Assembly (NCBI RefSeq): GCF_902652985.1
Contig: NC_047017.1
Span: 17,360,001-17,424,000, forward strand
Reading direction: 5' to 3'
DNA from: Pecten maximus
Taxonomy: Eukaryota
DNA: 64,000 nt
Both the position numbers and the translations under genes were made by a program. The notes under the pieces were generated by a model, which was not told the DNA's origin, did no database searches, and saw only the letters and a list, made by a program, of their open reading frames with translations. Position 1 is the first letter of the stretch. Every line of letters begins with the position of its first letter. Shown here one piece after another: positions 23,937 to 55,618 of the stretch.

Positions 23937-26900
23937 TTACCCGACAAATTGACTGGGATTGAGAACATCAAATTTCATTCCGTTTCCCATGGACCCTGAT
24001 GTGCTGCCAGCACTAACTCCACTCATAAACTTGGATGGATCGGTCATACTGGAAGAGGACATCATTTGTTGATTAAGTTGATTTGGGTCGAAGCTACCAG
24101 AGCCACTACCACTGTTAGATCCTCCTCCAGAACTACTCCCAGAACTGCTGCTACTTCCACCACTACTTGACCCACCCCCACCAGAAGAAGAGCCACCTCC
24201 CATCATGTTGCTAGGCGACATCATCTGACTTGAGCCGCCACTTGGACTTGACGAACCCCCACTTGATCCACTGCTGCTGCCTCCACTACCAGAAGAACCA
24301 CCTCCCATCATGTTACTAGGTGACATCATCTGACTTGAACCACTTCCAGACGATGATCCTCCTGTTGATGACGAACCTCCTCCACTTCCACTCATCATAT
24401 TGCTCGGCGACATCATCTGGCTGGAACTGCCACCAGATGATCCACCACTTGAACCCGAAGATCCACCACTGCTCCCCATATTTTGCATGAATTGAGCAGG
24501 ATCAATTTTGTTTTTATCGGGACTGTTAATTGCATTTGGATCAAAGCTACCAGAACTACTGCTGCTACCCCCTCCAGAGCTGCTACTGCTTCCGCCGCTA
24601 CCCCCGGAACTTCCTCCCATCATGCTACTAGGCGACATCATCTGGCTCCCGGATGAACCTGAAGATCCTCCCATTGACGATGAACTTCCTCCGCTTCCAG
24701 TCATCATATTGCTTGGTGACATTTGACTTGAACTGCTTCCTGATGACCCACTACTTGATCCTGAAGTTCCACTTCCACTGGAACTGCTAGATGAACCACC
24801 ATTCATGTTCATTCCTTGAGTCATAGAAGACATTTGCTGCTGCATATTTTGGAGATTTTGGTTGAGCATGTTGTTGTTCATCGATGTCGGATCAAAGCTG
24901 CTGCTGCTACTACTGCTACTTCCACTTCCACCACTACTTCCACTGCTACTACTAGGTTGTTTCTGTTGATTAAGATTATTAGGGTTAAAACTACCTGTAT
25001 TTGATCCTGAACTGGACCCACTAGGGGATGACTGGCTTCCACTGCCTCCGCTTCCACTATTCATGTTTTGTTGAGCTTGCTGCATCATTTGGTTGTTCAA
25101 AGCATTAGGATCAAAGCTGCTGGAACTTCCACTAGATCCTGAACTGGATCCTGAACTAGATCCTGAACTAGATCCTGAACTAGATCCACTCGAAGATGAC
25201 TGACTTCCGCTACTGCTTCCTCCTCCACTGTTCATGTTTTGTTGTGCCTGTTGCATCATTTGGTTGTTCAAAGCATTAGGATCAAAGCTGCTGGAACTTC
25301 CACTAGAACCTGAACTGGATCCTGAACTAGATCCTGAACTGGATCCACTCGAAGATGACTGACTTCCGCTACTGCTTCCTCCTCCACTGTTCATGTTTTG
25401 TTGTGCCTGCTGCATCATTTGATTATTAAGTGAGTTGGGGTCGAAACTGCCCATCGATGAACTTCCTGAAGAACTGGAAGAAGAACCTGATATCATTTGA
25501 TTAGGGTTGAAGCTGCTACTTGAACTCCCCGAACTACTTCCGGAACTGCTTCCGGATGAGGAACCGCCAGAACCCGAAGATGGATTATTGGATTGCATGT
25601 ACTGTTGAGCTTGCTGCATCTGTTGTTGGAAAAGAGCATTTGGGTCGAAACTTCCAGATATGCTCGTATCTGACTGTGAAGATCCGGATGAACCTCCACT
25701 GCTACCATCTGAAGGGTTTGCCGGATTACTCCCTCCTGGGGATGCTACATTGCTAGAGCTACCTGTCAGAAACGACTGAGCAGCTTGTGATTGTTGTTGA
25801 TAGATGGCGTTAGGATCGAATGAAGCCCGTTTGAATACTGAAACGAACGTTTGATATATTTAGTGATTTATAGGAGTGATGAAAGTAGCTGAACAATAAT
25901 ATCACAGATAATAGTTAATATGTTCATTCATCAATGAATTATACATTGAACATATAAGCCGCACAGGAATTAGATATAGACGCAAAAAAATGAATTATAC
26001 TGCATCATACAGCTGTTTTGTCCTTCTAGAACTCATCAATACTATGGACCTGAAGTGCTTCTGCCTAGCAGTTAACGGAGGAAACTAAAAACAAGTCGAA
26101 AGAAATGTCAACATTTTGATGGGGAGGGAACAACAGCCTTATTACTCGATACATTTGTTTAGCAGAAATTCAATAACAGAAACACCATTTAACTGTCAGC
26201 TTTAGCTATTAAAAACTACCTGGTAGTTATTTAACTTACATTTGTTTTGAAAGAAGCGCTGGTTTGCATGTGCTAGATGAACTATGGCAGCTTGTCTAAC
26301 ATTATAAATCTACTGTTACGGTGAATCATGGGGTTAAAGTTGTAATATATATAACCTGTAATTAGACTGTTGATTCAGAGATATCGTATCCAACTATCTA
26401 TACAAATTGGCGGTGCAAGTCCAGTGATATATAATTAAAAGGATATTTATCTACTGAAGCGTTTTGAGTAGAAGAACTTCAAGTGGCAATCGTATTAAAA
26501 GATTGAATTGAATTGAGTTACATTTTAACCACTAATCTTTAAAATGGTTTAAAAACAAGGTGCGCTTGGAATTTTATCAATTTTTTTTATTATCCAGTGT
26601 TATTTATAGGTGTGTGTTTAATACGTAAAAGTACCAGCGGTATAGAAAGCATTACAGTCTAAATCGCGATTATAAATCTATAATACTGTTTGTCAAAATC
26701 AGTTTTGGCTCATCCCACACATAAGGACTATCAAGAGTTGTAGTAGCTACATGTGCGGAACGAAACGAACAACCAAGGGAAAAAAACAAATTAAGAGTTC
26801 AACCTCCTTGCCATGGACCAAAAACAACACATTTGAAAACGTCATGTCAGACACAAAGGATTAGTACCTTAAGATATTAATGAGACAAATCACAATAAAA

Positions 26901-27746
26901 AAAGAAAAATAATTTAAATTGGAAATCAAAACAATATATATATACAAGGCGTACCTACGGAAATAAGGAGGAAAGGACAATGTGCAATAAAAGAGAAAAA
27001 TACAAAGTATATATCTACATGATGACATGCATATATGCATTAGGTAAGAGCTGTCTTACCTGAATTAAGGAAGAGGTGAAGGATATCATTATTCTAGTAA
27101 GTAAATGATCTATTGGTACAGATACTGTACAACATAAAATGTTTGTTTTATATAAACATTCGGCTTTCAATGTTTATAAGGAACAACAGGAATTGTTTAA
27201 GACAATTATTCTATTTATAACCACGACATCCGAAATTTTGTACCACACAACTTCACATATCTAATGAGATTGAGACCACAAGAAAAACATATCATTTTAA
27301 ACAGTAATGACCACTAGATACTATTTATCCATGTGAGTAATGTTCACTGCATTGTCGGGTTCCGGGAGCTGCCGGGAGCTGAGAGCACTTTCATTAGACA
27401 TTTAAAGAGGACTGGTGAAATACCATATCGGATTTCTCTACCAAAAATAAATTGTTTTTGAGGATGCATTTATTTTTTGCATGATTATCATTATGTGATT
27501 TCAACTCTTGTACTTTGGATACCAATAGTATCGTTTTTCATCCATTCCAATTTTGCGATGTCTTTTTCGCGATCGTTACATATTTGCAAAAAAAAAAAAA
27601 TAATAATAATATCAAAACCCGCAAAAATAACCAGTTTTGTGGTTATTCTGTGAAATAAGCTATAAGAACTTATATCGTTAAAGTTAAGGATTACCTGGGA
27701 GTGCATTGCAGCATGCTATGCAGACGAGTGCTATACAAAGAATCAT
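23937..27746 (-). CDS. FDPN gene A: secreted Ser/Gly/Met/Gln-rich FDPN-repeat protein, ~650 aa
   Basis: Exon 1 27695-27746 encodes signal peptide MILCIALVCIACCNA-LP with a phase-1 donor GTAATC. Exon 2 23937-25837 has acceptor TTTCAG and starts VFKR-ASFDPNAIYQQ, in frame with the 560-aa ORF. About 10 F[DN]P[NT] motifs; ends QFVG*. Confidence 0.85.
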
Positions 27747-29589
27747 GTTGGTAGTCGCTGATTGACGCCAGGCTTGTCTGCGGAACGGTGTTTGTGGACG
27801 GCGGCTCTACTGGCCAGGTCACCACTGAGGTCAGCTCTTTATCTCTCGGACAAGAGCGACGAGCTGTCCTATAACCATTTAAAATATTGGGCTAATCATT
27901 TACACAACATCTGCCTCCCATCTATCGCCATGTCGTGAGGATTTTGAATAACGTCAATAAGTCAATTTATCGAAAGACACCTTGCATTCTTTATCTTAGA
28001 AACATCACGTCTCCGTATTTCAAAGAGAATATTATACTGACAATAATTTATGCTTGATAACAATTTTGTATATTACACAAACTCAACTCGAAATCGATGA
28101 AACTAAAGTCGAATAAAAAAAATAGATATGAATAGAGACCCTTGAAAAAGTGCAAGAACAATAGAACCTTGTGATCCAGAAGAAAATTGCTATCAATTTT
28201 CACATTTTTTGATTTTTGATTTTATAAACACGACCGCTTTTTGTAATTCATTATACATAGGATAGTCCATGGAAACAAGGGAGTTGGCACTAAAAAGTGC
28301 TATCTTACTATGTAGGTCGAGTTCTTTGGGCGATTTGGTCCCGTATTCCTTTTCCTTGCGTGATATGGCATTACCCTAGTTCTCATTTTGATGGCTTGAC
28401 ATTACATAGCTGATGCCTAGGCAGTAAGTGACTCAGATATCATTCTCGTCTATCATCATTATACCCTTTTCAAATGTTTCTGATTTTCTTTTCATTCTTT
28501 ACTCAAGAAAAATTAATTTCGAGTTCGATTTACGATTTTTGTATTCTTTTGTTCGGGAGTTATAGAGACAGTATTTCTGAATAACTACTAGACTCGATGT
28601 CACAAAACTTTGGTAACCGTTTGATTTATAAAGATATTAGTTTTGTTGATATGCTCTTCGCGTTTCTATTTTAATTACGGAATTCCACTATCCTATATGT
28701 AAATAAGACATCCATTCAAATTAAGCTAATTACACCCCGTGAACGGAATATGCTGTCAACTACGTTATAAAGAAGGAAATAGAGCAGACCGGGGGGCCGT
28801 TTTATGAATGGTATATAATCTAGTCCCTTGGTTCACGGGAAAAGTCATTCTCCTGTAATTGTGAGGAAAAGTTAAATGGCTGCACAGATAGAATATCTCA
28901 ACACTCCCCGAATTCCCATGGATTAACAAAGAGGGACAACTGATTGCCGTTACAAGACCCAGTTAATTAAGATACATCACATTTCTCCTTTTTTGTATGT
29001 CAAAAATTAAAATTTTAATAACACACTAATCCATAATATCGTTTGCTTCTGGGATAGGTTTTGTGATTTATCAAAGACGAGGCGATCTAATTGAAAAATG
29101 CAAGATTTTTTTCTTCTTCTGAAATATGAACCTGTCAATCTACTCTATCGATAGAAAACTGATATGTCAGTCGATAATACTATGCTCCAGTCAGTGAATG
29201 ATTGAATTTGAGTTTACCCTATATATATCATAAGGAATATGATTTTTTTTGGGGGGGGGTCATAAACGTTAACTTGCCCCGTTATCTCTAAGTATTTGAC
29301 TTTATATATATTTTTTTGTGTTAGTTCACAACTAATATTTTTCAGTCAATTTATGCACCGATAATTTGAAATAGGTAATGGGTAAATGTTCCAATATTTA
29401 AAACAAAGAATGCTGTCTTTCGAATGCACTTTAAAAAGATAAAGTTATAAATAAGTATATTAAATTGCTTTATCATCCAAAATGCCTACATTGTGTGACA
29501 ATTATACGCTTCATGTATTTTCAAGTTCAACCGATCTGCTTTATATTGTCGTTAAACGCTACCAATATAGATTTTGTCTGATAATGTCA

Positions 29590-30125
29590 CCCAACATTAT
29601 CATGCAGTGCCAATTTGTGCGAGTGTATAAGGATTCGCTAGCTTTGCCACACAACATTATGCAACAGTGCCCAGTTGTATGAAGATTTGTTAGCCTTGCC
29701 ATGCAACACGTTATCTAACAATGTAAATTTGTCGGAAGACTTGTTAGCTTAATAATACAATGCATTGTCTAACAGTGCCCAGTTGTATAAAGATTTGTTA
29801 GCTTTACCATGCAACACATTATCTAACAATACTAGGTTGTATGAAAATTTGTTAGCTTTATTATACAAAACATCATCTAACAGTTTCCAGTTGTATGAAG
29901 ATTTGGTAGCTTTACCATGCAACACATTATCTAACAATGCTAGGTTGTATGAAGATTTGTTTGCTTTTAATACAACACATTATCTAACAGTTTCCAGTTG
30001 TATGAAGATTTGTTTGCTTTTAATACAACACATTATCTAACAGTGCCTAGTTGTATGAGGATTTGTTAGCTTTTAATACAACCCATCATCTAACAGTGTC
30101 CAGTGTATGTAAATTTGTTAGCTTT
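29590..30125. repeat. ~54-bp diverged tandem repeat (~10 copies)
   Basis: Recurring TTGTATGAAGATTTGTTAGCTTT...CAACACATTATCTAACA; 18-aa periodicity in the ORF track. Confidence 0.85.
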
Positions 30126-33155: not shown

Positions 33156-34742
33156 TTAAGCCGTTCCGGGCCTTTCAGAATCAGTATTGGAAAATGTTAC
33201 TTTCTTTTTTGCTCTAATGTCTGCTACAGAAACGAAGCCGAAAAAGTTTGTGGAACGTCCTACAACTTTGAACGAATTTGTTTTCCGCAGAGAGCTTTGT
33301 TGAGGTTTCTTCTCCTTAATTGTCTTCCGAATACCTTTTGTCCTGTCTTGTTGTGTTTTGGTATTTTGTACACGTGTCTGGTTCTGTGTGGCTACAACTT
33401 TTTTGTCCGTTTTTGCAACACTTGTTGTAGTAAGACTACTTTTCCTTTCCACATCCTTTGTATTTAGAGTACCGTCTGAATCTATGCTTTTATACCATTC
33501 CGGTTGGTTACTTCGTGTCGAGGAAGCAGACCTCTCAGTATGGCTGACTCTTTTATGCGATGAAGCCGGTTTATCAGCTTTTTCTACACTCTCGTTTTTA
33601 ACAGTGTTCCGTTTGACATTTTTCTCTATTTTGGGAGTATTTTGAATAGTTTTCTCCATTTTGGGAGCATTTTGATGATTTTTCTCCATTTTGGGAGCAT
33701 TTTGATGATTTTTCTCCATTTTAGTATTGTGATGACTTTTCTCAACGTTCACCGTCGATGAATTCTTTGAGTGGCTATTTGAAGAAGATGAGTTTGATGA
33801 TGGCGGTCCTTCCTGTCGCGAGGATGTAGCACGTGACTGGCCATTAGTTAATGATGACTTATATTGCACTTTATTAGAACTTTGATTGCTTGGAGATGGA
33901 GCTGACGACTTAGACGATGGTGATGGTATACCGGGTACTTGTGCCATTCGAATTGATACTCGGTCTGGTTGCCCAGGCGACATGGTGACCATTATCCGCT
34001 CACCTCCCTGTCCAGGTTTGATATTTGGAAGGGGTAGGGACATTTTTCTAGCTTCACCCTTTTCAGTTCTAGAAACATTCATATCATTAACTTTAGAAAA
34101 GTTTGGATTCCTATAAACATCCTGATACGCAGGTCCTTGTGAGCTGTAACTACGTGAATCATTCACTGGAATATATGAATTGTTATTTTCAGGTCGAGTA
34201 GTAAATTGACTGGAATCATACCTGTTTGGAGTCTCCCTCCGTAAGTTTTCCCCGGGCATGTTAGCCATAGACAGTCGGGATGAAGGCAGGGAGCCATGAT
34301 GTACCATACTTGATCTAGAACTGTTCACATCCCCGCGCGGATATTGGCGAAACTGGTAAGCATCCTGACTGCTGTTGGCCCTTGAGTTGGGTACACTTTC
34401 ATTCCTCGCGTTATCCATTTGCTGCTGGTGAATCTCCAAATATGACTTGGGGAACCGACCACTGTAATGAATGTCATTTAAACTCATACTCTTTCGGAGA
34501 AATCGGCGTCCGTTGTCCTGACTATCCCTTTCCATCCAATACCGGCGTTCGGAGTCGTACCTATGTTTATCGACGACTCGCTGCTGTACCCGTCTTCTCT
34601 CGTCGACTGGAGACTGCATTGTCCTCAGAACCTCCATCATCTCCATGTCAAGCCGTTCCTCGTAGAACGGGATCACCTCCATCTGTCTCATCGGTTTCAT
34701 GACAGATACATTTGGTTTTTTCGTAAGCACGCTTTCCCGCAT
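33156..34742 (-). CDS. Intronless uncharacterised 528-aa low-complexity protein with basic C-terminus and no signal peptide
   Basis: 1.6-kb ORF in AT-rich DNA; internal 10-aa repeat KMEKNHQNAP; C-terminal KKKVTF. Confidence 0.8.
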   Translation of the reverse strand: MRESVLTKKPNVSVMKPMRQMEVIPFYEERLDMEMMEVLRTMQSPVDERRRVQQRVVDKHRYDSERRYWMERDSQDNGRRFLRKSMSLNDIHYSGRFPKSYLEIHQQQMDNARNESVPNSRANSSQDAYQFRQYPRGDVNSSRSSMVHHGSLPSSRLSMANMPGENLRRETPNRYDSSQFTTRPENNNSYIPVNDSRSYSSQGPAYQDVYRNPNFSKVNDMNVSRTEKGEARKMSLPLPNIKPGQGGERIMVTMSPGQPDRVSIRMAQVPGIPSPSSKSSAPSPSNQSSNKVQYKSSLTNGQSRATSSRQEGPPSSNSSSSNSHSKNSSTVNVEKSHHNTKMEKNHQNAPKMEKNHQNAPKMEKTIQNTPKIEKNVKRNTVKNESVEKADKPASSHKRVSHTERSASSTRSNQPEWYKSIDSDGTLNTKDVERKSSLTTTSVAKTDKKVVATQNQTRVQNTKTQQDRTKGIRKTIKEKKPQQSSLRKTNSFKVVGRSTNFFGFVSVADIRAKKKVTFSNTDSERPGTA

Positions 34743-38019: not shown

Positions 38020-39301
38020 ATGCCACAAGCGGTTTTCTGTCTCCTTCTTTTGCTTGCAAGAGGTAATTGATTTGTATCAATTTAAAACTTTATAATTTGC
38101 TTCCTTAATAATTTCATAAACAACTATAATTATAAGTCGATTGACTTGATGTTATAATCATGTAATTTAAACGGGTCACTTTTAGCCTTCAGTTGTCAAA
38201 GACGTACTGCTCTAACTTAGTATTCGTGAAATTTAATGTCACGCGACGTTGAAATCTTAAATGAGTGTACCCATGTATTCACGTTTCTGTCACGCTAAAT
38301 TATGTTCTTCTTTTGTTTCTACTTTAGGAAGTTTGACGACTGCATCTAGACCGGAATTTATATCAGCTGGTCACTTTCTTAATGCAAACTCCAGACCATT
38401 GTCTGGTCAAACGCTCGGTAATCATGGACCGTATATGTTTCATCAGAGACCAATGTTACCCAGTCAAAATGAAAATGAAGTAAGTAGACCATCGAATAAT
38501 GCTGGTGTAGCATTTGCCCCACAATTGATACACGACTATTTCAAACCTGGCAAAGAATCATACGGCCAAGGATCGCTTGAGCAGCAAAACAAATGGCCGT
38601 CGAACTTCATGGCAACAAGGCCGAAGCCCATCCAAATGACCCTGGCTAAGAACAGCAGACCTATGTTAGGGTTACTAAAACAACTTATGGCCGGTAGATT
38701 CCATATAGTGGCTGACGCCATTCATTTGGATGCTGTACCGATCATCGAACGACCTATGCAGCCGTATATAGAAGGTATGATTATTGAACCAGACAGTTTA
38801 ATAACAAGTGTACATAGCCACATTGAACCAATACAGCCAATGCATTTTGAATTACCAGAATCAGCCAGACCAGAACACGTTACTTCTTTGACGAATGCCC
38901 GCCCAAACAATGGTGTGCAGCAAGTCCCATTCCAACTGCTTCTCAAAGAATTCAATGACTTGGCTGCGAAAATTAATTTAAAACCCAATGAGCACGCGGT
39001 TACATTTTCCAGCTTATACCAAAATTATATGAAGCTGCTCGAACAACAAAACAAAACAGCATCTCCTCCTATTTTAAAAACTACACTGCCCACAACGACT
39101 GCAAAAACAGAATCAACAGCACCACCTACGACTTCGGAAACGAGGTCAACCATAATTATGAACGTAACACCCACCACATCCGATATTCCAATGAAGACAA
39201 AAGATGACTTTAACATGATCCAGACATCATTCAGCAAAGCTAAAGATGATAAGCCAGCCGTGTGGCTTCCGGGTATGGGACCGGAAATGACCTCACCGTA
39301 A
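38020..39301 (+). CDS. Gene B: secreted orphan protein, Pro-rich with Thr-rich C-terminal part, ~338 aa
   Basis: Exon 1 38020-38062 (MPQAVFCLLLLLAR, phase-1 GTAATT) joins exon 2 38328-39301 (pyrimidine tract + TTTAG) in the frame of the 346-aa ORF; AATAAA near 39479. Confidence 0.8.
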
Positions 39302-40184: not shown

Positions 40185-43100
40185 CTATTTCTTTTTCCCA
40201 AGTGGATTAGCATTTGGGTCAAAACTTCCTGCCGACATTGAATTTGGATCAAATGATCCAAAGTGCATGGAGTTGGGATCAAATGATCCAGCTTTCATGG
40301 AGTTGGGGTCAAATGAGCCAGCTTTCATGGAGTCAGGGTCAAATGATCCTGCTGACATAGAGTTAGGGTCAAAGTTCGGCATAGAATTGATGACGTCAGG
40401 ATTAAATGTTCTTTTCCTCCTTCCAGTTCCTGATAATAGAGGAAGTAATCAATTTTTGAAAATCATTTCATTTTTTTTCTGGTAACCTTATTATCAAACC
40501 CTGTACCATTCCGTAGATACTAAAACTATTTCCATTTCTGAAATTAAATCTTACTCGGGTATTATTGATTTTTTAAATGTAGTCTTCCATAATTAATCAA
40601 GTTAGTTGGCTTAGAAGAAGAAAATGCCCCTAGCAGAATAACATTTGTAATTTCATATATTTTATCAAATACTACTAGTTAAATTCTTTGTAGAAAAATA
40701 GCATCATTGATAAAACTTCAATTTGAAGAACTTCATAAAAACTATCATATTATTCTAAGCATTCAGAAAAACAATTGCAATATGAAAATATACAAACCAA
40801 AGTTGTTTATACTGTTGGGATCAAAGGAGCCAGATGAACTTCCGGTAAAAGAATTTGGGTCAAAAGAACCGGATGTACCTTCACCAGATGTAAATTGATT
40901 AGGGTCAAACGACCCACTGCTGCCACTGAAATAGAACGCCCAGATATTGGTAACGAGCAATACAAACATGGAAATGCTTATAATAGACTGGCTGAGAGAT
41001 TTACATCCGTAACACAAAAACACATTCTTTCTTTATCAAAGAAATCATTTTTTATCACAATTGTTCGTTTCACAAAAAAGAAAAGAAACAAAGAAAGAAA
41101 TGCAACCCTTGACACCAGTAAGTACATGATATAGATTCATATTCGTTGGGTTTATGTTATAAAGACATATCTTTTGCTGAAATATATAATCATTGTTCAA
41201 TAAAAGACAACCAAACATTAATATTCCTTATATCAAAAATAACAAAACAAGAAAAAAAAAAAAAAAAACCGACCTTCCCCCGGATCCGCTGGAGAATCCA
41301 CTGCCACTACCAAATCCACCAGTACTGCTTCCGAACCCGGAGCTGCTTCCGTCGCCTCCGAAGTTACTGTTGATTGCGTTAGGGTCGAATGAACCACTTC
41401 CGGTACTGCTGCTGCTGCTACCGTCACCAAAACCATTGGAGCTGAACCCTCCAGAACCAAAGTTCTGGTTTAAGGCATTAGGGTCAAAAGTTCCTGGAAA
41501 TTATCGAGAATTTGAGAATACACAAGACTTTGACTATTTGACATTAGGGCAAATATGATCATCTGTATTATATAAAAAAATCATAGTTGGGTTTCAAAAG
41601 CTGTGATATAAACAAACGAAATGAGTTTGTAATAGACATATACATGTATGCCAATGACGTGCTAGACAAATAAAAAGTAACAACACAATAACAAAAGACA
41701 GCTCCCGGTTGAATCTCATTTAAATATTATTAGCAATAAACTTTACCATTTATAAATAATTCTTATATAATTACAAAAAGATCGAAAACATGCTATAACA
41801 ATACCTTCTGATGATAAGTTCCCACTTCCTTTACAAACTCTCAGCATCGGTTTAACATAATTTGACAGAAACTCACCATACACTAAATATAAATTCACCA
41901 TTTATCAACATAACACAAACTTATCATACACTTAACATAAACTCTCCATACACTAACATAAAACTCGTCAAAGGCTAAACATAAACTCACCATACACTAA
42001 AAATAATTTAATCATACACTAAACATAAACTCACCATACACTTAACATAAACTCACCATACATTTAACATAAACTCACCATACATTTAACATAAACTCAC
42101 CATTCACTTAACATAAACTCACTATACACTAAACATAAACTCACCATACACTAGACATAAACTCACTTTACACTAAAAATAATTTAATTATACACTAAAG
42201 ATAAACTCACAATACATCTAACATAAACTCACCATACACTTAACATAAACTCATCGTACACTTAACATGAACTCACCATACACTAAACATATACTCACCA
42301 TACACTTAACATAAACTGACCATACACTTAACATAAACTCACTATACACTAAACACAAACTCACTATACACTTAACATAAACTCACCATACACTAAACAT
42401 AAACTCACTATACACTAAACATAAACTCACCATACTTAACATAAACTCATTAACGCACAGACACGGAACAGAAAAGCACCAGACACGAACAAGAAAGCAC
42501 CAGACACGTAAACAGAAACGCACCAGACACGAAACAAACCACCAGACACGGAACAGAAACGCACCAGACACGTAACAGAAACGCACCAGACACGGAACAG
42601 AAACGCACAGACACGGAACAGAAACGCACAGACACGGAACAGAAACGCAGCAGACACGAAAAAGATAAACTCACAATACACTAACATAAACTCACCATAC
42701 ACTTAACATAAACTCACCATACACTTAACATAAACTCACAATACACTAAACATAAACTCACCATACACTTAACATAAACTCACTATACACTTAACATAAA
42801 CTCACAATACACTAAACATAAACTCACCATACACTTAACATAAACTCACCATACACTTAACATATACTCATCATACACTTAAAATAAACTCACAATACAC
42901 TTAACATAAACTCACTATACACTTAACATAAACTCACAATACACTAAACATAAACTCACCATACACTTAACATAAACTCACCATACACTTAACATATACT
43001 CATCATACACTAAACATAAACTCACCATACAATTAACATAAACTCACTATACACTTAACATAAACTCACAATACACTAAACATAAACTCACCATACACTT

Positions 43101-44497
43101 AACATAAACTCACCATACACTTAACATATACTCATCATACACTTAAAATAAACTCACAATACACTTAACATAAACTCACCATACACTTAACATAAACTTA
43201 CCATACACTTAACATTTACTCATCATACACTTAACACAAACTCACCATACACTTAACATATACTCATCATACACTTAACATAAACTCACCATACACTTAA
43301 CATAAACTCACAATACACTAAACATAAACTCACCATACACTTAACATAAACTCACCATACACTTAACATAAACTCACAATACACTAAACATTTACTCACC
43401 ATACACTTAACATAAAGTCACTATACACTTAACATAAACTCACCATACATTAAACATAAACTCACCATACACTTAACATAAACCCATTATACACTAAACA
43501 TAAAATCACCATTCACTTAACATAAACTCACCATACACTATCATAAACTCACCATTCACTTAACATAAACTCACCACAAACTAAACATAAACTCACCATA
43601 CACTAAACATAAACTCACCATACACTTAAAATAAACTCACCATACACTTAACATAAACTCACAATACACTTAACATAAATTCACCATACACTTGATATAA
43701 ACTCACCATACACTTAACATAAATTCACCATACACTTAATGTAAACTCACCATACACTTAATATAAATTCACCATACACTTAAGATAAACTCACCATACA
43801 CTTAACATAAACTCACCATACACTTAACATAAACTCACCATACACTAAACATAAACTCACCATACACTTAAAATAAACTCACCATACACTTAACATAAAT
43901 TCACCATACACTTAATATAAACTCACCATACACTTAAAATAAACTCACAATGCACTAAACATAAACTCACCATACACTAAACATAAACTCACCATACACT
44001 AAACATAAACTCACCTTATACTGAACATAAACTCACCATACACTAACATAAACTCACCATACACTTAACATAAACTCACCATACACTTAACATAAACTCA
44101 CCATAAACTCACCATACACTAAACATAAACTCACCATGCACTAAACATAAACTCACCTTACACTGAACATAAACTCACCATACACTAACATAAACTCACC
44201 TTACACTGAACATAAACTCACCATACACTGAACATAAACTCACCATACACTAAACATAAACTCACAATACACTTAACATATACTCACCATACACTAAACA
44301 TAAACTCAACGTACACTTAACATAAACTCACCATACACTTAACATAAACTCACCATACACTTAACATAAACTCGTCAATGACTAAAATAAACTCACTATA
44401 CACTAAACACAAACTCACTGTCGGCCCAACATAACTCACCATCAGCTAAACATAACGGAAGAACAACCAGCAAACAAACACGAGCGAGAGTTGACAT
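40185..44497 (-). CDS. FDPN gene C: secreted Gly/Ser/Phe-rich FDPN-repeat precursor, 216 aa
   Basis: Exons 44440-44497 (MSTLARVCLLVVLPLCLA-D), 41274-41493, 40798-40925, 40185-40429; phases 1,2,1 are consistent and total 651 nt. 12 F[DN]P[ND] motifs, internal GTG-RRKR, C-terminal PLGKKK*. Confidence 0.88.
41868..44450. repeat. 22-bp minisatellite (~105 copies) in gene C intron 1
   Basis: Unit TAAACTCACCATACACTTAACA; its reverse complement contains ATG|GTGAGT. Confidence 0.95.
42455..42665. repeat. Second ~22-bp repeat (~10 copies) embedded in the minisatellite
   Basis: Unit CAGACACGGAACAGAAACGCAC. Confidence 0.9.
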
Positions 44498-46230
44498 CGT
44501 CGAAGTTCTGTAGAAAATGACATAGCTTCCTTGATCAATTGCTTATCTTCCTCGCCTACACTGGAATATGGGTTATCACCGCCAAATTGGTCAACCTGCA
44601 ACTATTGGGGGTCATCCTGCTGACCAGAACCCAGAACGGTCATCTTTTTAGTAATTTATACAATAATTGTTTCAGAGAAATATAAAGATTTTGCAAACTC
44701 CATTAACTATGGGGGCTTTTGCATCCCAACATTCAACCAAAATACTGTATCTATTGCACATGTTTCATATGGTAATTGATTTTTGAAATATGTTTGAACA
44801 TTTCAATGAAAATTTGTTGGACCACCGTACAATATAAACAGTCAATTCAGTTTAAAGAATTTATGTGTTTTGATGCTTGATCCAACATTATTGTCCAGGC
44901 TAAAGTCATATAGCATATATCAAATGTTGTCATTCTTTATAGTCATCGAAGCAGCCATAAAGAATGACATTATTTTGTGATTTTGATGCACACGTGTATA
45001 AAACGATGGGTTGCTATATTATATAGAAACAGACAGAGAATGCAGACATTAAACGGAATAGTAATCCTAGCTTAAAATCTATAAAAACAATGGCAAACTA
45101 TGAATAACTTCTAGATATACATGGAGACAATTGAAAAGATACAAGAACGAGAGGCCAGGCGTCCCGGAAGGGTAAGTGTCTCCTGTTTCTACGCCAAAGT
45201 AATGTAACGTCCTCAAAGAGAGCACTAGGGTAGTGATAATAGAATCACCAGGCATATCAACGCTCCTCAAACAGGGAATTTCGAAACGTCCCGATGAGAT
45301 CCCGACGCCGATCATAAATGTTTGCAATGATCTTCATCAACAGGGACCAAAACAGGAACAAATTTAAATCTCTCATTTTGCAGAAATCTATATCCTATCG
45401 TTATCTTAAAATATTGGCGATAGTGTCAGTTCTGCACAGCTTACTTAAATAAATAGAAACACGCAGATCACAATTTCAAATTGCCTGCTTTAAACTAACT
45501 CATAATTTCTTATATTGAACATTGTCATAACCTCGTTACCTATGCATAAATTGCCGATTTACGCTGACAATATAATGATAATATATCTAACTCCATTATC
45601 AGCTCATATTAGTCATTCAAGCACTTGATGCATCAAAAGTTGAATCCAGCTGAAGAAGTTTTCGTTCGTCACCAATAAATGTAAGTGGATATCTCTATTC
45701 GAGTCGTTTATTAGGGGTCTTAGGAAACAGGAATCTGGACGATAATGACGACGGTTACAATGACAGCTAAATTGAATGAGAAAAATACGTTTCTTACAAA
45801 GTTTTTCATTAAATTTTTGACAGTTGTAATCATAAATGGAAATTGTTTGAATGAAATAGATCTAGACGTAATAAAATCGATTGATTTCTGAAAATCCATC
45901 TATCATGCTTAAAGTAAACTTCCCACCTATGGCCATTTGTTGTGACGTCCTAAATACCCGATATTATAATACCCAAAGATAAAAAGCGTATCGCCTGCGT
46001 GTCTAATTGAAGATAAAAGCCACACAGCTGCTTCCAGGGGGAAGTGACGTAACTGATGATGGCGGGAAATGGAGATAAACCGAGGCAACCTATCTGACTC
46101 TCCGATAATGCTAACTGGACATCATGCTTGGAGATGACAACTGTTAGAGTTATATTACGTTCTGTATTTTAGAAAACATTTACGAGTATTTGCTGTTAAT
46201 TGATTAATTAGTTGATAATTACGAACGAGG

Positions 46231-49200
46231 ATGAGGAGCAATGTGACTTGGACTGCCGTTGCTATGACGATAGTGTTGATTTCCGGTAAGTACCACGTAT
46301 ACGTTTGATTATGAAGAAAATTCAATATTATTCAAAATAATGCTTAGTCATATATATAAGGTGCATTCCCTAAGCAAAAAACGTTGCATTGTTCGTATTT
46401 AATGTTTCAAACATATACGTAATTCCGAATTCCGGAATTAAGAACCACAGTTAATCAATAATTATCAATCACCACCATCTCGACTCATATAACCCCGTCA
46501 CTATGAATACTTATAAAATATTACATTTTATAATTCCTATAACCTAACAAAAAATAGCCAGGCGTTACTTATTTTGAACTTGTCTACCAGTAGTTTGAAA
46601 TTGAACCAGAGGTCATGTTTTATCGTAGTACAGAATGTACTTTTGAACCATATAAGAGCGACTTATTTCCTCACTTTGGCAGCATTGTCAATATACAATT
46701 AAACCCCACCAACTCAAAATCGTATGAACCATGTAAAAAGTTAGAGGATTACGAGGTATTCGAGTAATCAGAAGCTTGTCAAAGATATCGATATCGATCA
46801 CCCCCATTCTGTAAAATCACAGAGGAAATTAACTGAAGTCACCTCTTTATGTTAAGACTGCTTTGGCTATCGAGAACTTTGTAACTCTTTTGTCAGACAT
46901 ATGAAGACTATGCTAACATTCAACATGCATGATATATGTTGACAACAAAATCAATCACTGCTATACATAATGGGATTTTTTAAAATAACTATTTAGTCTG
47001 CATCTATTTAATTGATCAACACATAAATATCATTTTGCAACATGGTGTTATGTGTTTTTCTTTATCTTTACAGGTACCAGTTCAATCGCACTACCCGGCC
47101 TTGACCTTAGCACTAGTGTTGATGACCCCGAACCTTTCCATCTACCTGCATACCTCAGTCCTGTAGGCGAAGGCAGCAAAGGGGTGAAAACCCAGCCCAC
47201 TACTCGCCCCCCTTCCACCCAGCAACCTGCTTCACACAGCATCACCGCCGGGCAAAATGGCGACGCATTCTCAAACTACCTCATAAAGAGTCTCACACAA
47301 ATGGACGCAAACACTCTAAAGACGCTTTCGAATATTATCAATCTGGAATTGAATAAACAAGTACCATCTCATCAGATACAAGGTCAAGCTCAAAGTCAGA
47401 CATATGACAAAGTTAACGTCCAAAGTCCACCTGAGGCAACACATATTGGTCAGTATCCACACATATCTCATGGGATCACCAGTGAGTCTTCAAGTAGCCA
47501 ATATAAACCTTCGACAATGGCAGGAGCTTCCCAAATGAAGCAGGAAGGTCAAGGATATTCTCACTCTAATAACCTATCCAATAAGCCACTTGGTTTGAAC
47601 GGTGGTCAAGCACCGGCTTTCTCACAACAGACCGTTGATCCCTCTAGGAACCAGCAGCCACAAATGGGAACTTCAGTTAGCCAGTCACAATTTAACCCTG
47701 GACAGATGACGGCGTCTAGTATGGGAGGTGGAAATGGTAACACGGTCCAGGGTATTTCTAACTCGATGTTTCAGACTGCTGTAAGCGGTGGCCGGCCGTC
47801 AGCCTCTAATATGGAAGTGGATACGTCATTTGATCCAAACAGACTCATGGCATCGATAGAAGCAGAGACGTCTCAATACAACCCGAATGCATTCATGGCA
47901 AAGCAAAATTACATCACCGCAAACCAATGGAACTTTGCTAAGCAAAACCAGGTACCTCAGAACACACAATACGTCAATCAGGTTCAGACGGATAATTCTG
48001 CCGTAGAACAACAGAAGAAACCAAACATTATGGGAACTACTCAGCTTAATTTTGAATCCTGATATAATGATGACAGCACTAGGCATTAAAGGCCTGAAAT
48101 TTACATTTAATCCCGATAAAATCAACTCGTTTGGAAGCAATGGGTTTCAGCCTGGTTTGTATCCGCAGTCTTCTGGCAATCGGAAGTTGCCGAAGAACAT
48201 GTTCAATGCAGATACAGTCAACAAGATGCTAATGAGTCACGGTGTAGAGCCAAATCATCAGACAAAACAACAGCCAACGAAGGACCAGGCAAGTCAGGTC
48301 GTCCACAAGTCGGTATACAATCCAGATACATTCAATCATCCGGCAGTACACACTGTACCAAACACCTACTTGCAGTTTATTGGAAATGAAGGTAGTGCTA
48401 CTGTGCAGTCATCAGTAAATAACCATATCGGTAATGGTAAATCAGAGCAATCCATACAATCCGAAACACCTTCTCGTCAGCAAAACGGGAATGAATTCCA
48501 CACACATTTATTGTCACCGATCAGTGATATGGGTAGCACGTCATCTATAAACAACACTTTACAGTCAGTGAAGTTCAATCCCGATCAGACAAATGCTGCC
48601 CAACGCCAGTTCGACCCAGAAATATTATATAAATCTCTGTTTGTCGGTGGAGGCAGACATACATTACCTAGCACACACATGACAATATCTCTACGAAAAT
48701 CGGCTCGCGATGAAAATGGAACAGACGCTGCAGAAATCAATACACCTAAACCACAGACAACCAGTTCAAACTCAAAAGATTCAGGACAATCTACAACTCT
48801 ATCGAGTACCGTTACGTCTACCAAACAACCGGAGACAAGTGTTACGTCAACCACGACTGCTACTACAACTGGAGCAGACGGACTCATGTTTAACCCCGAC
48901 AACGTAAATGCAGGCATTGCCCAGATGATGAATTTCAGCCCAGGATCTCTGATGATGGGATACAATCAGATACAAGCAGGGCAGAACACTAATATGGCAA
49001 ATGCTGCATATAACCCTAATCAAATCAATCAAATGGGAGAATTCCAATCAGTGGTGTCTCCCATGATGGCGGCATTAATGGGAGAAAGCGGCGGTGAGAG
49101 TAACATTGGGTCTCAGACTGCCTCTCAGCCTAATCATGACCAGTCTCAAAGTATATCTGTCATGTTTAATCCAGCTGATGTGAATCACGCAAAGATGAGC

Positions 49201-50196
49201 TTCGACATCAACCAGCAGATGGGTTTCAATGAAAATTCAGGCAACGCAATGTTTGACCCCATGAAGATAAATGTTCTTACAAATAAGAATTTAAATAAGT
49301 CGGTCGGTGCTACCAACAAAAACAACTTCTTTAGCTCAAACGGAATGAATATGATGGATAATTCTGTTTTCACCGGAATGTTTGACCCCAACAAAGTCAA
49401 TCAAGCGCCTATGGCAGATATGAAAGTTAACAAACATCAAAATAGTTCAGCTAGCTCTTCAATGATGAATTATATGTCAACATTTTTGGGAGTGGGTAGT
49501 GTTGGAGGTGCTGGGGGATCTGTGTTTGGCGGGAGTTTTAATCCCTCGGAAGTTAATACGGCTGTTTTTAATCCAAATGATGTGAACAATGCACGAATGA
49601 ACTTTGACCCCGCTAATATGCTTGATCGTAATCCTGGTTACGATTCGGAAAAAGCGTCTCAGACAAATTTCGATCCTACAAAGATCAACGATATTCACAT
49701 GAATTTCCAGCCGCCTTTTATACATGTTGATAAAAACAAGGACGTTAACTCTACATCTAATGCATTTAGTCAGTACAACTCCAAATTCACTCCAGGGCAG
49801 CTCTCTCCTAATGGTAACGCTATGGTGTTTAATCCCACTGAGATAAACCAGGCCAAAATGCACTTTAGCGCTGTAGACATTTTCAACTCCACTGACATCG
49901 GAAATTCCATTGTGACACAGGGCAGCTCGCTCTTCAGTCCACAAGTGCCAAATAAAAATTCCAACATTGCGATGCCTGTGTTCGATCCAGTAGCAGTCAA
50001 CAATATGCAAATGAATTTCCTTCCCAATTCAGCATTGGGTGCTTATCAATCCTCTTTAACAACCATCGGAACAAAACCGAAGCCGAGTACCACATCAATG
50101 TCCACCCCTACTTCACCTACTACTACGACAAGGCAGAAAACGTCCATCACAGCTCCAAGTTCTGTTTCATCTCCAAACTCCACCGACGTAAACTGA
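46231..50196 (+). CDS. FDPN gene D: large secreted Asn/Gln/Ser/Met-rich FNP/FDP-repeat protein (~1058 aa if a 1-nt frameshift near 48054 is corrected)
   Basis: Exon 1 46231-46285 (MRSNVTWTAVAMTIVLIS, phase-1 GTAAGT) joins exon 2 from 47074 (TTTACAG). The 336-aa and 714-aa ORFs overlap and share motifs and composition; ~20 [FY][DN]P motifs; AATAAA near 50236. Confidence 0.82.
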
Positions 50197-51974
50197 TAGT
50201 AGTTGCAAGGAAGAATGTGTTTATCATAATGCAAGAAATAAATATTAAATGCTGTTGTGATGATATCTAGCACTGCTTTATTTATTTAATTATTTATGAA
50301 TTTATTAACTTCCATTTTTGTCACTGATCATTACTAACATAAATGTCATACATTTGGTTCAACAAATTTCATGCTTGAACTTTTAATTTCGTTGGTGTAT
50401 ATGAAATGTGACATTAAATTGCTGTGCTGCCCTAGGTCATAGGAGAGATCAAGAAAATGACGGATTTTATCTAATAGTAGTTTTTCGACTATCTCCCTGA
50501 GAAAACCTACCAATCAATGTTTCGTGTTACCACGTTATGAGGAACAAACTGATCAACTGAGAGATGGGTGAAGCAAGCATGTATCTGTTCTTGAACCGTT
50601 CAGTTTGACTTATATGATTAGTGGAGAATTGATGAAGATGATAATGAAATACTAGGCTCTACGCTCGATGGATTGCACAAAATACGCACAAGATATTAAC
50701 ACCTTTCGAAACAGTTTGATACAGTGGAATCAAAATGAATTAAACTTAACCAACAGTTGTTTCAGTCTTATACAATTCGTCAGTGATGCTATGAGAGGCA
50801 AATAAAACCCGAAACAGGCCGAAAGAAATAGATGTCAAAATCTGGATGTTCTGAACTGTGTAACTATTCAAATAAACTAAATCGTGACAAGCAATCTAAG
50901 ATATACCTTGGGGACTTAAAAGTCCACCAGCAGTGTCTACCTCCTGTAATCACTAATAATTGTGCAAAAGACACACAAGCTATTATCACCTTTAAACAAA
51001 TGAGAGTTCGAGACAGTGGAAATGAAGTGAGTTAACTACACCATAATACGACAACGACCCCATACGTGGCGATTTATGCGGCCATAAAGTGCCAATAGAT
51101 AAAGAATGGAGGGAAAGACAAAAAAACCCACAAAAATCGAATATACAATGTATATGTATATAAAAGAGTGTGTCTAATTCTCACTTCGATTCCACATAAT
51201 CATCATCATTACCAAACTTTAAGAGGCACGGTACAATATCTGGTGTACAAATATGGCGCTCCAACAAATATTGAAAAATTATATTTCCTTCAATAAAACA
51301 ACAAAATGATAGACTAAGAACTCATTTTTGACAATTTTAACCAAGGAGAATCTGACCACCCATGGCCCTCGACATGATGTCTACACCATCTGTGTCTATG
51401 GAAGGTAACATAAATGTTGCAGCTAGATTTCGTAGCATATAAGGTACTTTCCTTTTTTCAATTATTTAAGAAACGTATTGGAAGTATAAGCTTGTATCAA
51501 TATATGGGCATGAAAAGACAATAACAACAATTTCATGAAAGAATTTGTGACACGATAAAAACATAAGCACACTTGGCTGAATTGTCCCTTTATTGCAGTA
51601 AATTTTCCATTAAATTATTTCTGTATTCTACAACGTAAGGTTGTATCTTAGAGAGATGGATATATGGTCTCGCTGAAAGGCCAAAATTGTTGTCTATGCC
51701 CAAAACTTTCCGAGGAAAAGGTGCGGTACATGGCACAAACGGAATGCAATGTTATCTTGGAACTAAATAATGCCAAGGTCGACATGTGGTCACTTACGTT
51801 AAGTAGATATTCCTGTACAAGGGAGTAACGGTCAAAGTGTGCCCAGATTGTCCTTCACTCTTGATAACGAACAATGATGTCACGTTTAAGATAATTCATA
51901 TCATATTAGTGTCTTCTCACTTATGTCACCTGCCAGTCCTTTGTCTTCGATAGATTAACACCTTTTCGAACATT

Positions 51975-54900
51975 ATGAAGTGGTTTTCACTTCTTTTCGT
52001 TGTGGCCCTCTTTCATGGGGGATTGGGGAGGAACTTTGCAGGTAAGAGATAGTGGCCAGAGTTAATGGTGGACCACATTTTGCTGATGGCAATTTGAGAT
52101 AAGAGAGTATTAGTTGAACTGTAATCTCGTGTACCCTAACTCAAAGTATAAATACGAAAACAAATTTCACATCTAAACTTTTATCTTTGCTAATTGATGA
52201 TGCTAGGTACATTTAATAGAAACTTAAGTACGGTTCGGAAAGTGCGTCATCACTGTGCTTTAACAAAAAAGGTGTCCACATATGCGATAACAATTAATAC
52301 CGCATCAACATCAATTCGAAAACAGCGAACCCAATAATATTCTTGTTTACACATGAAAAAACGTACTATTGTTTTGCATAATATTAATGCAATATCATAA
52401 TTATTTGGATACACAAAATATTTCATTATGAAATAATATCATTTATTGCATTTTTGCCAGTGAAATATAGAAATTTATCAAGCTAATAAAACTTATATTT
52501 TCACTGCAGCGATGAGCAGTGAAAATATAAGATGTTGCAGTGAAAATATAAGATGTTGCAGTGAAAATATAAGTTTTGCAGTGAAAATATAAGTTTTCCG
52601 TTTTTGACCAGTCAGAGCGGACCTTTGTATTCACCTCGTTGAAACTTGCCGATTTTTCCAATCGAAGCGGAGATAGACAAATTGGTTATTTTGCTATATT
52701 TTTGAAATAATCTGACCAATTTTTGACCAAATACTCACTTGACGTTAGCTATTCATGCACATATTCTCCGATAACTGTAGAAAATGCTTAAATTGCGCTG
52801 ATCAGTCCTTTAAAAATGGCGCCGTCATGTTGACGTAGAGTAACGTCACAATGAGATGACGTCATTACTGATTCCCGCACTTTTTGACACTATTAATTTT
52901 TCGATGTTTTTAATTTTGTTTAAAAGTTTATGAAATGCAATAAAAAGAAAATTGAATGGTTTCCCGTTAAATATAACATATGTTTCACTCGTATGACAGA
53001 ATATCGATATTTTCACGAGTGCGAAGCACGAGTGAAAAATATCGATATTCTGTCATACGAGTGAAATATATGTTATATTAAACGGGCAACCATTCAATAT
53101 CCTCTATGTATTAATGATAGTTACATCGATAAATTGATTAATATTTTGATAGCGGATACAAGTCTATTTTACGCTCAATATGACGTTGGAGGAAGAGTAA
53201 AAAGAGTAGAATCCGGTGTCTGGTACAGTAACAGAATATTTAGAATGCACAATTCTAACCCTTATTTCAGCAGGAACCGATTACCCGAGTAGTATTTGGA
53301 TCAGATTGAAGAATATGTGTATTCCATAAAGCAGGTCAATGTCATTTCACATTAATATATTTTAAAAGAACAAAAGTAGGTTCATTTAATTTCAGAAGCC
53401 ATTTCTTCGATGCATTTTTGTTATGTTAAATGCTGGGATATAACATGAAAAAAAAACGCAAACCCAAAACCAAAAATAGAATTTCGAAATTCCATTCTGG
53501 GGCCATTAGGACGTTTTCTAGACATAAAAGAATATATCGTGATCAAAAAGGATGACATCGCCTAAACATAAAAAGAAAGCAGTACTTGTTTTCTTCTCTG
53601 ATATGACGTCATAAGATTCTGACATTACTGCCATTACTGGTAATTACAAAATCACGTATTGTAGTTACGTGACACCATTGAAGTATTTATTGTGTTAACG
53701 AGTGTTATTTACTTGATGTTTACTAGTGACATTTTCTTGATTTACACTATAACAAGTTAGGATTTTCGAATGTAACATAAATAGATCATTTAGAAAAATA
53801 ATGATTGCATGAAACTTCATAGTCATCTCGAGGCATTTGATGCGAAAGGAGCGCGGACATCAAGGCCATTCTTAATCAACTTGTATATACAAGTTTTCGG
53901 TCTCCTTCTTCAGGATTACGGAGACAGACGTCCAGTTCCGGTGCCACTTCCGTTTTTTCACCTTTTAGTCCAGTAAAAATGGGAAGCGTGAGTGGTGCCG
54001 GTGCCATGAATCCGTTCGCTGCTCAGAGTCAGATGAATCATACCGGGTTTCAAAGTAGTTCGTCATCAACTTCTTCTATTTTCTTGTCTTCCGGAAAGAA
54101 CACAAACTTCAATCCCCTGTCAGGACCCTCTGGAGCGTTAAACCCCTTTAACACCCAGGCATCGTCAGGACAGCAAAGTACTTCTGGAAATAACACAAAC
54201 TTCAATCCCCTGTCGGGACCTTCTGGAGCATTAAACCCCTTTAACACCCAGGCATCACCAGGACAGCAAAGTACTACCGGATACTCCGGACCCGCAGGCA
54301 ATCCAATGCAGTCAGGAAATCCTATGGACATGAATCCATTTGGAGGTAGCACTAATGCAACTTCCAATTCTTCAAGCCAATCAACGGCAAAATTCCCATT
54401 AAATATGAATCCATTCGGATCAAACCAAATGAGTTCAACTGGTTTCTCATCAACATTTGATCCTAACAAAATTAACGGGATGGCATTCTCGGCACTGATT
54501 GGAAGAGGAACATTAGGTCAGTTTAATATACCGCTACTATTTACTATGTACGCTTTTAGAAGCAATCAAGTGGAATAATATTCTTATTTTAGTGTGTTGC
54601 TATCATTGTAGTTAAGCGACAAGCCTCGGGAGGATCTTCCACGATCCCCAAATACGACCCAAATGCGGTCAACCAGTTGACGTCGAGTTTCCTTGACCCC
54701 TCCAAGTCCATGCTCGGCGCAGGAGGTGCCACTGGTGGCATGTACAACCCAGATCAGTGGAATACTATCAGCTTCAACATGTTCAACCCCCAGTCTCAGC
54801 TAGGGAAGCGATGTAAGTTGGGACTTGTTGTAATACATAGGCTAAATGTCGTATGTAAATTACACAAACACAAGATGACGACTCACATTCAAAGAAATTT

Positions 54901-55618
54901 GTAGCAGAATATGTCGCGTTAAAAGTAATTCGGATAAACATTCTCAAGACAATTAGATTCTGCATTGAATTATAAGCATTTAAATATCTAGTCAATCTTA
55001 TAATTGTATTACGGTCAAAAGATTATTCTTTGCGTTTATGTTTAAGATATCAAAAGACAAACTGCTCAAGCGCCAAGCACAGGTGGAAGTATGTCACCTT
55101 CTGCTGGATCAACTTCCGGTGGATCTAGTCCCAGTGGATCTAGCCTGACCAGCGGGGCAAGTCAGACAGGAGGAGCCAGTCAGTCTGGGGGAGCTAGTCA
55201 GGCCGGAAGTGCTAGCCAAACTGGGGGAGTTAGTCAAACTGGGGGCTCGAGTCAGACATCAGGGGCTTCTCAGCTGACACAACCTAGCATGTTTACTAAC
55301 CCAGGGGCATTTACAATGGGTGGTGGGTCACCTTCCTCATCCTCTTCGTCTTCAGGAAGTAGCGGAGGAAGTAGTAGTAGCAGTAGTAGTAGTGGCAGCG
55401 GAAGCGGAAGTGGAGGTAGTGGATCATCCAGTTCCAGTTCTATACCATCATTCGATCCAAACAAATTAAACCAAATTATGTTTAGCTTCCTTGATCCCTC
55501 AAAAGCCCAACTAGGGCAAGGAGGGGGAGGGGGGTCTGGTTTTAATCCGGACCAGATCAACAGCCAGGTGTTCAACTTCTTCAACCCTAACCTCATGATG
55601 GGAGGAGGAAGACGCTAA
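51975..55618 (+). CDS. FDPN gene E: secreted modular precursor, 480 aa, three modules delimited by dibasic sites
   Basis: Exons 51975-52041 (MKWFSLLFVVALFHGGLG), 53914-54516, 54612-54812, 55047-55618, all introns phase 1, total 1443 nt. Modules start LRR-Q, VKR-Q and IKR-Q; AATAAA near 55720. Confidence 0.88.
52441..53107. mobile_element. Hairpin-ended non-autonomous element in gene E intron 1
   Basis: ~75-bp-arm palindrome at 52950-53100 centred on GC-GAA-GC; internal ~20-bp repeats GCAGTGAAAATATAAG; second copy at 62744-63038. Confidence 0.75.

Follow-up and report, generated by a model that had tools for sequence, protein, structure and literature searches.

Recurring FDPN-type motifs and a conserved module in a cluster of secreted, low-complexity proteins of the scallop Pecten maximus and other bivalves

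The stretch of DNA considered here ("the window") is the 64,000 letters of Pecten maximus scaffold C3 between 17,360,001 and 17,424,000, free of Ns throughout. It holds four genes, called A, C, D and E, whose products carry a short recurring motif centered on the letters F[DN]P, and a fifth secreted gene that lies among them. What they constitute is, very probably, an ancient and bivalve-restricted cluster of paralogous secreted, cysteine-free, disordered proteins built from F[DN]PxxΦN units. The gene models (Table 1) were rebuilt from open reading frames and splice signals; homology searches and folding were run on single exons, and the joined models were used only for checks of frame and composition. 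All the junctions in the models of A, C, D and E are GT-AG. That each of these genes opens with a short signal-peptide exon ending in a phase-1 intron had been proposed in a first-pass annotation of the same DNA, and the rebuilt models agree: all four signal exons are phase 1 with G as their last letter, and they encode what, judged from sequence, are hydrophobic N-terminal signal peptides. Exon 1 of E is spliced in RNA-type contigs, and the signal exons of C, D and E have phase-1 counterparts in Argopecten irradians, where the called E gene starts at the signal-exon ATG and the called C gene one codon upstream of the matching ATG. The clustered genes of the first-pass annotation can accordingly be taken as real, spliced, of secreted type and of low complexity.

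Table 1. Exons of the clustered secreted genes (positions in the window)
Feature	Position	Strand	Description
Gene A, exon 1	27746-27695	-	Signal peptide, 17 residues plus 1 nucleotide, GT donor, phase 1; modelled from sequence only
Gene A, exon 2	25837-23937	-	Open reading frame and model; Ser/Gly/Gln/Asn/Met-rich, 10 FDPN/FNPN motifs
Gene C	44497-44440 (signal, phase 1), 41493-41274, 40925-40798, 40429-40185	-	216 residues
Gene D, exon 1	46231-46285	+	Signal peptide, phase 1; near-identical exon with the same donor in Argopecten
Gene D, large exon	47074-50196	+	Asn/Ser/Thr/Gln-rich, 18 [FY][DN]P motifs, mucin-like Thr/Ser/Pro stretches
Gene E, exon 1	51975-52041	+	Signal peptide, phase 1; in contigs of runs X2, X4 and X5
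Gene E, cassette exon	53914-54516	+	603 nucleotides, phase 1-1, NPF/FNP-rich, RRQ start, FDPN unit at end
Gene E, module exon	54612-54812	+	KR-Gln start, FDPN module, Gly-Lys-Arg end; RNA junction
Gene E, last exon	55047-55618	+	KR-Gln start, Ser/Gly/Thr/Gln spacer, FDPN module, Gly-Gly-Gly-Arg-Arg end
Fifth secreted gene ("SRP-motif" gene)	38020-38062 (phase-1 signal exon), 38328-39301	+	338 residues

A six-frame scan of the whole window for [FY][DN]P[NDST]x[ILVM]N returns 23 matches, every one of them in the coding frame and on the coding strand of a named gene (7 in A, 4 in C, 8 in D and 4 in E); 30 shuffles of the window yield 0.13 matches on average and never more than 1. Shuffling the residues of each protein reaches the observed count in none of 2000 trials, the exception being the part of D that precedes a frameshift (taken up below), which has no strict match to begin with. 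A recurring motif common to the four genes, as first proposed, is thereby established, and the mature regions are indeed free of Cys: every Cys of A, C, D and E lies within the signal peptide. Met makes up 3.2-7.5% of the four proteins.

The first-pass interpretation stands in its description of the genes and the family, but not in its statement that the proteins share little except the motif: A, D and E have in common a conserved module of about 50 residues. Fifteen copies of the module, from Pecten, Argopecten, Crassostrea and Mytilus, follow one 58-residue pattern with zero gaps, and 16 positions are invariant in a 14-sequence alignment that combines them with homologs from databases. The pattern runs [FY]DPNxΦN, five residues, ΦDPSxxxLG, a Gly-rich loop, [FY][ND]PDxxN and xxxFxΦFNP. 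Its length is fixed, whereas that of the Ser/Gly part differs even from one scallop to another. Profile comparison (hhalign) aligns the E module with the best-conserved region of the D family at a probability of 92.7% (E 4e-7) and with the last 52 residues of A at the same values; the match to C exon 4 is weaker (80%), and C exon 2 matches at one motif only. When E exon 2 is used as the query, the module is detected in the Pecten genome only in two E exons. Unionid mussels (Potamilus, Sinanodonta) have proteins of about 200 residues in which an A-type N-terminus (KR-Gln, FDPNALY, Gln-rich) is followed by a single E-type module; A and E are therefore linked, and this combined form may be close to the ancestor of both.

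Structure prediction assigns the module no compact fold. AlphaFold2 gives the large D exon (16-sequence alignment) a mean predicted local distance difference test score (pLDDT) of 42.5, with short helices only, placed at the motifs, and with residues 500-550, the conserved core, as the best region; the module alone (14 sequences) reaches a pLDDT of 57, with a helix after each Asx-Pro. The proteins are thus predicted to be disordered chains with Asx-Pro-capped helical motifs, each Asx-Pro most likely capping a short amphipathic helix in these models, and a combination of flexible spacers with short motif helices fits a sticker-spacer picture. Prediction of a four-copy complex of the module scored 0.01, which amounts to no verdict: it is evidence neither for nor against self-association.

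How widely is the cluster distributed? Searched in full with HMMER, 1.84 billion representative proteins contain only 16 matches to the large D exon, all of them bivalve where named: Argopecten irradians (68% identity), Crassostrea virginica, Pinctada imbricata, Mytilus coruscus and Potamilus streckersoni. D is single-copy in the Pecten genome, and its orthologs with complete N-termini (Mytilus, Potamilus, Dreissena) continue from the signal peptide into a conserved ΦPGΦ. E-type proteins are found in Dreissena polymorpha, Potamilus, Sinanodonta and further assemblies. The homology search with gene A was swamped by low-complexity candidates and gave no match, and A orthologs have consequently been seen only indirectly, as an A-like gene in the oyster and as the unionid fusions. 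C exon 4 has 159 matches in its own genome, and those that were inspected are minisatellites translating as decapeptides and not paralogs. A search of the ESM Atlas with D and with the last exon of E gave no usable match.

The order of the genes is also retained. Argopecten irradians repeats the arrangement of the window: fifth gene (+), C (-), D (+), E (+), and then an EF-hand gene. (The called Argopecten E gene, locus L001 13963-22796, is 1091 residues long, runs past the end of the locus and overlaps the EF-hand gene; most likely the model is fused or a read-through.) Crassostrea virginica keeps the order, with the fifth gene, a Gly/Phe/NPF-rich gene (-), D and a multi-module E, and has an A-like gene besides; in Mytilus coruscus the set consists of C (-), D (+) and E (+), E again with several modules; in Potamilus, C (-), whose product is a GGFGG-type repeat, adjoins D (+), and an E-like protein is encoded on the same contig; in Dreissena, D is followed by an E-type first exon. 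Conservation across these lineages implies that the cluster predates the split of Pteriomorphia, Palaeoheterodonta and Imparidentia. The ratio of nonsynonymous to synonymous substitution rates (dN/dS) lies between 0.10 and 0.32 across the cluster, with the fifth gene at 0.32: the genes are under purifying selection.

A and C differ in composition. The A model is 650 residues long, of which 38% are Ser and only 19% Gly; its second exon begins after KR and closes with the FDPN module, the C-terminal residue being Gly. C is Gly/Ser/Phe-rich in the manner of FG proteins (11% Phe), with 12 [FY][DN]P motifs, an internal RRKR site and a Gly-Lys-Lys-Lys C-terminus. Its first intron is filled by a 22-nucleotide minisatellite of about 100 copies (41865-44455; TRF), the units of which carry GTGAGT-like donor sequences on the gene strand. 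The product of the fifth gene has recurring [ST]RP motifs and a Thr-rich mucin-like tail, without the FDPN motif; its syntenic orthologs are found in Argopecten (locus L001 3222-4556) and in Crassostrea (locus L015 1198-2238).

D is not the intact open reading frame of 1058 codons that it was first taken to be. As assembled, its first frame stops after 347 residues, at 48060-48062, and the +1 frame continues for another 713 codons; the conserved core of the protein, residues ~436-550 of the second part, lies beyond the break. Alignment of the DNA with that of Argopecten, whose D ortholog is uninterrupted across the site, traces the shift to one extra base at 48045-48054, within an LNF/NPDIMM motif. 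An intron bridging the two frames was considered and rejected: there is no plausible GT-AG pair, and an RNA-type contig runs unspliced through the site. The extra base is also present in one RNA-type contig that comes from another individual (it differs by single-nucleotide polymorphisms and a GCC insertion). Since dN/dS against Argopecten stays low past the break (0.22 before it, 0.18 after), selection has acted on the downstream part through most of the divergence. As to its origin, the break is either recent, or polymorphic, or an error shared by chance.

Transcripts were examined by mapping contigs of runs X1, X2, X4 and X5 to 46201-52200 (6,000 letters), which takes in D and exon 1 of E. 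Contigs of X2, X4 and X5 start at 51898, 51934 or 51944, run through 52041 and go on with letters that match from 54617 onward, which places the junction at 52041-54612, canonical and phase 1. This abundant transcript (922 nucleotides at a depth of 280 in X2) corrects the first E model: exon 1 is joined directly to the module exon, and the NPF-rich cassette exon is omitted in each of the three runs in which the junction of exon 1 is found. The E protein has 279 residues without the cassette and 480 with it. The cassette exon is kept in Argopecten (dN/dS 0.125), and Dreissena has a comparable exon downstream of D. (In Pecten it contains a 93-nucleotide internal duplication.) The X5 contig has a SMART-type template-switch oligo directly before 51898; it is therefore cDNA, with the 5' end of the mRNA near that position, and 51898, 77 nucleotides upstream of the ATG, is the likely cap site of gene E.

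Coverage of D is piecewise, extending over 47304-50249 at a depth of 2-14 that rises toward the 3' end, and it goes no further than the polyA signals (50237 and 50244); in these four runs no contig covers 46201-47300, where the D signal exon lies. In four runs of one 2015 study, 34-41% of the words of 46231-55618 are present, a share close to that expected from the exons of D and E. X2 and X4, which belong to one study, contain transcripts of both D and E; co-expression of the two genes is, to that extent, weakly supported. Logan contigs with homologs were tried as a further source of expression evidence and discarded: they contain intron sequence or start at an exon boundary, and so look genomic and carry no tissue information.

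The family had been described at the outset as one that was not recognised, and nothing found since gives it an identity: no Pfam family, no informative name (D and E homologs are called only uncharacterized or hypothetical) and no paper. Nine exon translations find nothing significant in Pfam; the nearest approach is of C exon 4 to PF25296, Decapeptide repeat region (19.1 bits, E 0.0012), below the 45-bit gathering threshold. A full-text literature search with motif strings, accessions and locus tags turned up no relevant paper. Both the protein family and its conserved module are new.

Several well-studied systems nevertheless resemble it in part. Like the polyprotein precursors of peptide hormones, which are processed by convertases and PAM, the cluster combines a signal peptide with repeated, dibasic-framed units, one per exon, with Gly as amidation signal, Gln as pyroglutamate signal and a copy number that differs between species; unlike theirs, its units are 60-180 residues long and mostly Ser/Gly spacer, and the module turns up in a mucin-like protein of about 1000 residues as well. 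(The prohormone framing by basic sites and Gly is present in E and C of four genera and is not present in D.) With FG-repeat nucleoporins and other sticker-spacer formers it shares Cys-free disorder and spaced, Phe-centered motifs in Gly/Ser/Asn/Gln spacers, and in C and its unionid ortholog, which are GFG/GGFGG-rich, the likeness is literal; but the cluster is extracellular, its motif is F[DN]PxxΦN rather than FG or GLFG, its module has a fixed length, and its cohesion is putative. Spidroins, too, join a long variable repetitive core to a short conserved terminal module, as A and each E unit do, although the module here is not predicted to fold alone and there is no sequence similarity. The vertebrate SCPP cluster offers a parallel in its tandem, fast-evolving, secreted disordered proteins that descend from one ancestor and share a signal-exon structure; lineage and sequences are unrelated, the shared intron phase here is 1, and there are no SxE phosphorylation clusters. 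As regards gel-forming mucins, D and the fifth gene have Thr/Ser/Pro stretches that may be O-glycosylated; the mature proteins of A, C, D and E have no Cys, and no Pfam domain is found, the Cys-rich VWD, C8 and CK domains of disulfide polymerisation included.

Abductin, the rubber of the scallop hinge ligament and a comparison made in the first-pass annotation, is likewise a secreted bivalve protein, Cys-free, of low complexity and containing Gly, Met and Phe. Its GGFGGMGGGX decapeptide repeats do not occur in A, C, D or E. A physical linkage was looked for and rejected: the abductin-like genes are on a different scaffold (C8, 22.78-22.87 Mb) and are without the FDPN motif. (There are at least four such loci, with FGGMGGG decapeptide repeats, in C8:22,777,575-22,874,951.) The family, in short, fits either the clustered secreted low-complexity proteins or the convertase-processed polyproteins, and combines features of both.

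What the products might do can be put as follows, tentatively and at somewhat less than an even chance: they make up a secreted, cohesive extracellular material. A, C, D and E would be released jointly and form a single extracellular gel or matrix, where the Phe- and Met-bearing motifs and the terminal module would provide cohesive contacts between long flexible spacers: Ser/Gly in A and E, Gly/Phe in C, mucin-like Asn/Gln/Thr in D, and probably O-glycosylated. Proprotein convertases would cut E and C, and possibly A, at the conserved KR/RR/RRKR sites, leaving pieces that might start with Gln (as pyroglutamate) and end in a Gly-derived amide; so capped, the pieces would resist exopeptidases outside the cell. 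Counted in favor of a material are 1) the compositions, FG-like in C, Gln/Asn/Met-rich in A and mucin-like in D; 2) the pairing of a variable core with a conserved terminal module, and the linkage of five secreted genes; 3) the statistics of motif and module, the freedom of the module from insertions and deletions, the module matches between E, D and A, the synteny and the purifying selection; and 4) the predicted disorder with helices at the motifs, the signal peptides, the presence of D and E in the same runs, and the absence of the family from three catalogues of bivalve neuropeptides.

Other observations weigh against it. No tissue, protein or material was found that is tied to any family member. 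The motif strings are not in the accessible portions of the supplements to a paper on insoluble proteins of Pinctada shell and ligament, nor in those to one on the bivalve biomineralisation toolbox; the supplements of shell-proteome papers and of papers on Met-rich insoluble proteins, as far as these were available, likewise gave no match. To judge by sequence, the fixed spacing within the module, the KR-Gln...Gly-KR framing and the multi-module precursors look like peptide-hormone features, and sticker-spacer materials seldom require fixed spacing. D is frameshifted in the Pecten maximus assembly and in one RNA-type contig. Most other Pecten maximus runs listed hold next to none of 46231-55618, which implies that expression is restricted.

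The peptide-hormone features are the core of the main rival, an explanation that is possible, if rather unlikely: E and C, and perhaps A, would be precursors of signalling peptides (a hormone, a neuropeptide or a waterborne pheromone), the module would be the receptor ligand, and D, as a larger relative, would serve some other purpose. Each exon would then correspond to one convertase-released product that begins with pyroglutamate and is amidated at its C-terminus. In E and C of Pecten, Argopecten, Crassostrea and Mytilus, exons do start with KR-Gln or RR-Gln and end with Gly-KR, Gly-RRKR, Gly-KKK or Gly-RR. The internal RRKR of C (RRRR in Argopecten) with its Gly-Lys-Lys-Lys end, and the placing of A between KR and a terminal Gly, are of the same cast. 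Conserved framing by basic sites, with Gln as the usual residue after the initial KR/RR, argues for convertase processing of the E and C modules; such cleavage also occurs in matrix proteins, however, Pif of the pearl oyster being an example. One module occupies each phase 1-1 exon, at 2 to 7 modules per precursor, but the pieces so released would measure 60-180 residues and consist mostly of Ser/Gly spacer, which no cleavage site separates from the module; such pieces are atypical for neuropeptides. A receptor ligand could be recognised in a module that does not vary in length and keeps its 16 invariant residues next to a variable Ser/Gly part, and a hormone precursor in a short E transcript at a depth of 280 (X2) as against 2-14 for D; yet the module strings are missing from surveys of oyster, pearl oyster and Yesso scallop neuropeptides and from the supplements searched (PMC4200219, PMC5996578, PMC8398477), and module or motif also occur in D, mucin-like, about 1000 residues long and without conserved dibasic sites, and in the 650 residues of A.

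Less probable again, and unlikely on balance, is the suggestion that these are paralogous secreted disordered glycoproteins with separate, non-assembling roles, as mucus, lubricant or surface coatings, the motif being a docking site for a shared enzyme, lectin or receptor. The mixed architectures and very different sizes of the proteins are what separate roles would lead one to expect, mucin-like Thr/Ser/Pro stretches are present in D and in the fifth gene, and the short Asx-Pro-capped helices of the models could resemble binding motifs. That the genes stay in tight synteny in five lineages (Pecten/Argopecten, Crassostrea, Mytilus, Potamilus, Dreissena) points instead to a regulation or function that they share, and D and E occur in the same runs. 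A cytosolic reading, in which the signal exons are mis-modelled, nothing is secreted and the motifs are linear motifs of endocytic type (NPF, DPF-like), can draw on the NPF repeats of the E cassette exon and on the resemblance of NPF, FNP and FDP in Ser/Gly-rich disorder to tails of the epsin/Eps15 type, but it is largely refuted and scarcely credible: RNA-type contigs splice a canonical signal-peptide exon onto E, Argopecten keeps the phase-1 signal exons with called gene starts at or next to them, the D orthologs of Mytilus, Potamilus and Dreissena start with signal peptides, and Pfam finds no ENTH, EH or other cytosolic domain.

If the preference for a cohesive secreted material is followed, one can go a step further, on more doubtful ground, and regard the FDPN module as a hitherto unrecognised extracellular assembly or recognition domain that dates from the base of the autobranch bivalves. 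It would have four carriers (mucin-like D, FG-like C, prion-like A and the polyprotein E), co-secreted, convertase-cut and capped by pyroglutamate and amide, that form a bivalve-specific material: ligament, byssal or settlement cement, or feeding gel. Disordered building blocks processed and capped in this way would constitute a new class.

Several bivalve materials (ligament rubber, byssus, cement, shell matrix, feeding mucus) are of interest to biologists and engineers alike, and the lists of their protein parts are far from complete. Here is a locus that has stayed together in five lineages of bivalves; it is transcribed and evolves under purifying selection, but neither a name nor a domain nor a paper could be found for it. 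It joins features that are usually separate: processing signals of prohormone type and long, low-complexity, material-like chains. A material would mean a new structural family of end-capped disordered building blocks; peptides would mean a new family of large amidated signalling peptides. The 58-residue conserved module, with clear orthologs in farmed species, is a defined and testable entry point to either.

The rest of the window calls for brief comment. An open reading frame of 528 codons at 33156-34742 (-), between A and the fifth gene, is Ser/Asn/Lys-rich, has no Pfam match and no signal peptide at its start, and is probably part of an unrelated gene. Downstream of E, at 60141-60356 (+), lies a calmodulin-like EF-hand exon; the EF-hand gene of Argopecten (locus L001 19981-22796) is in the same position. 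Two minisatellites, at 15428-18710 (22-nucleotide unit, 149 copies) and at 961-2319 (48-nucleotide unit, 28 copies), explain where the composition profile is GC-rich and skewed.

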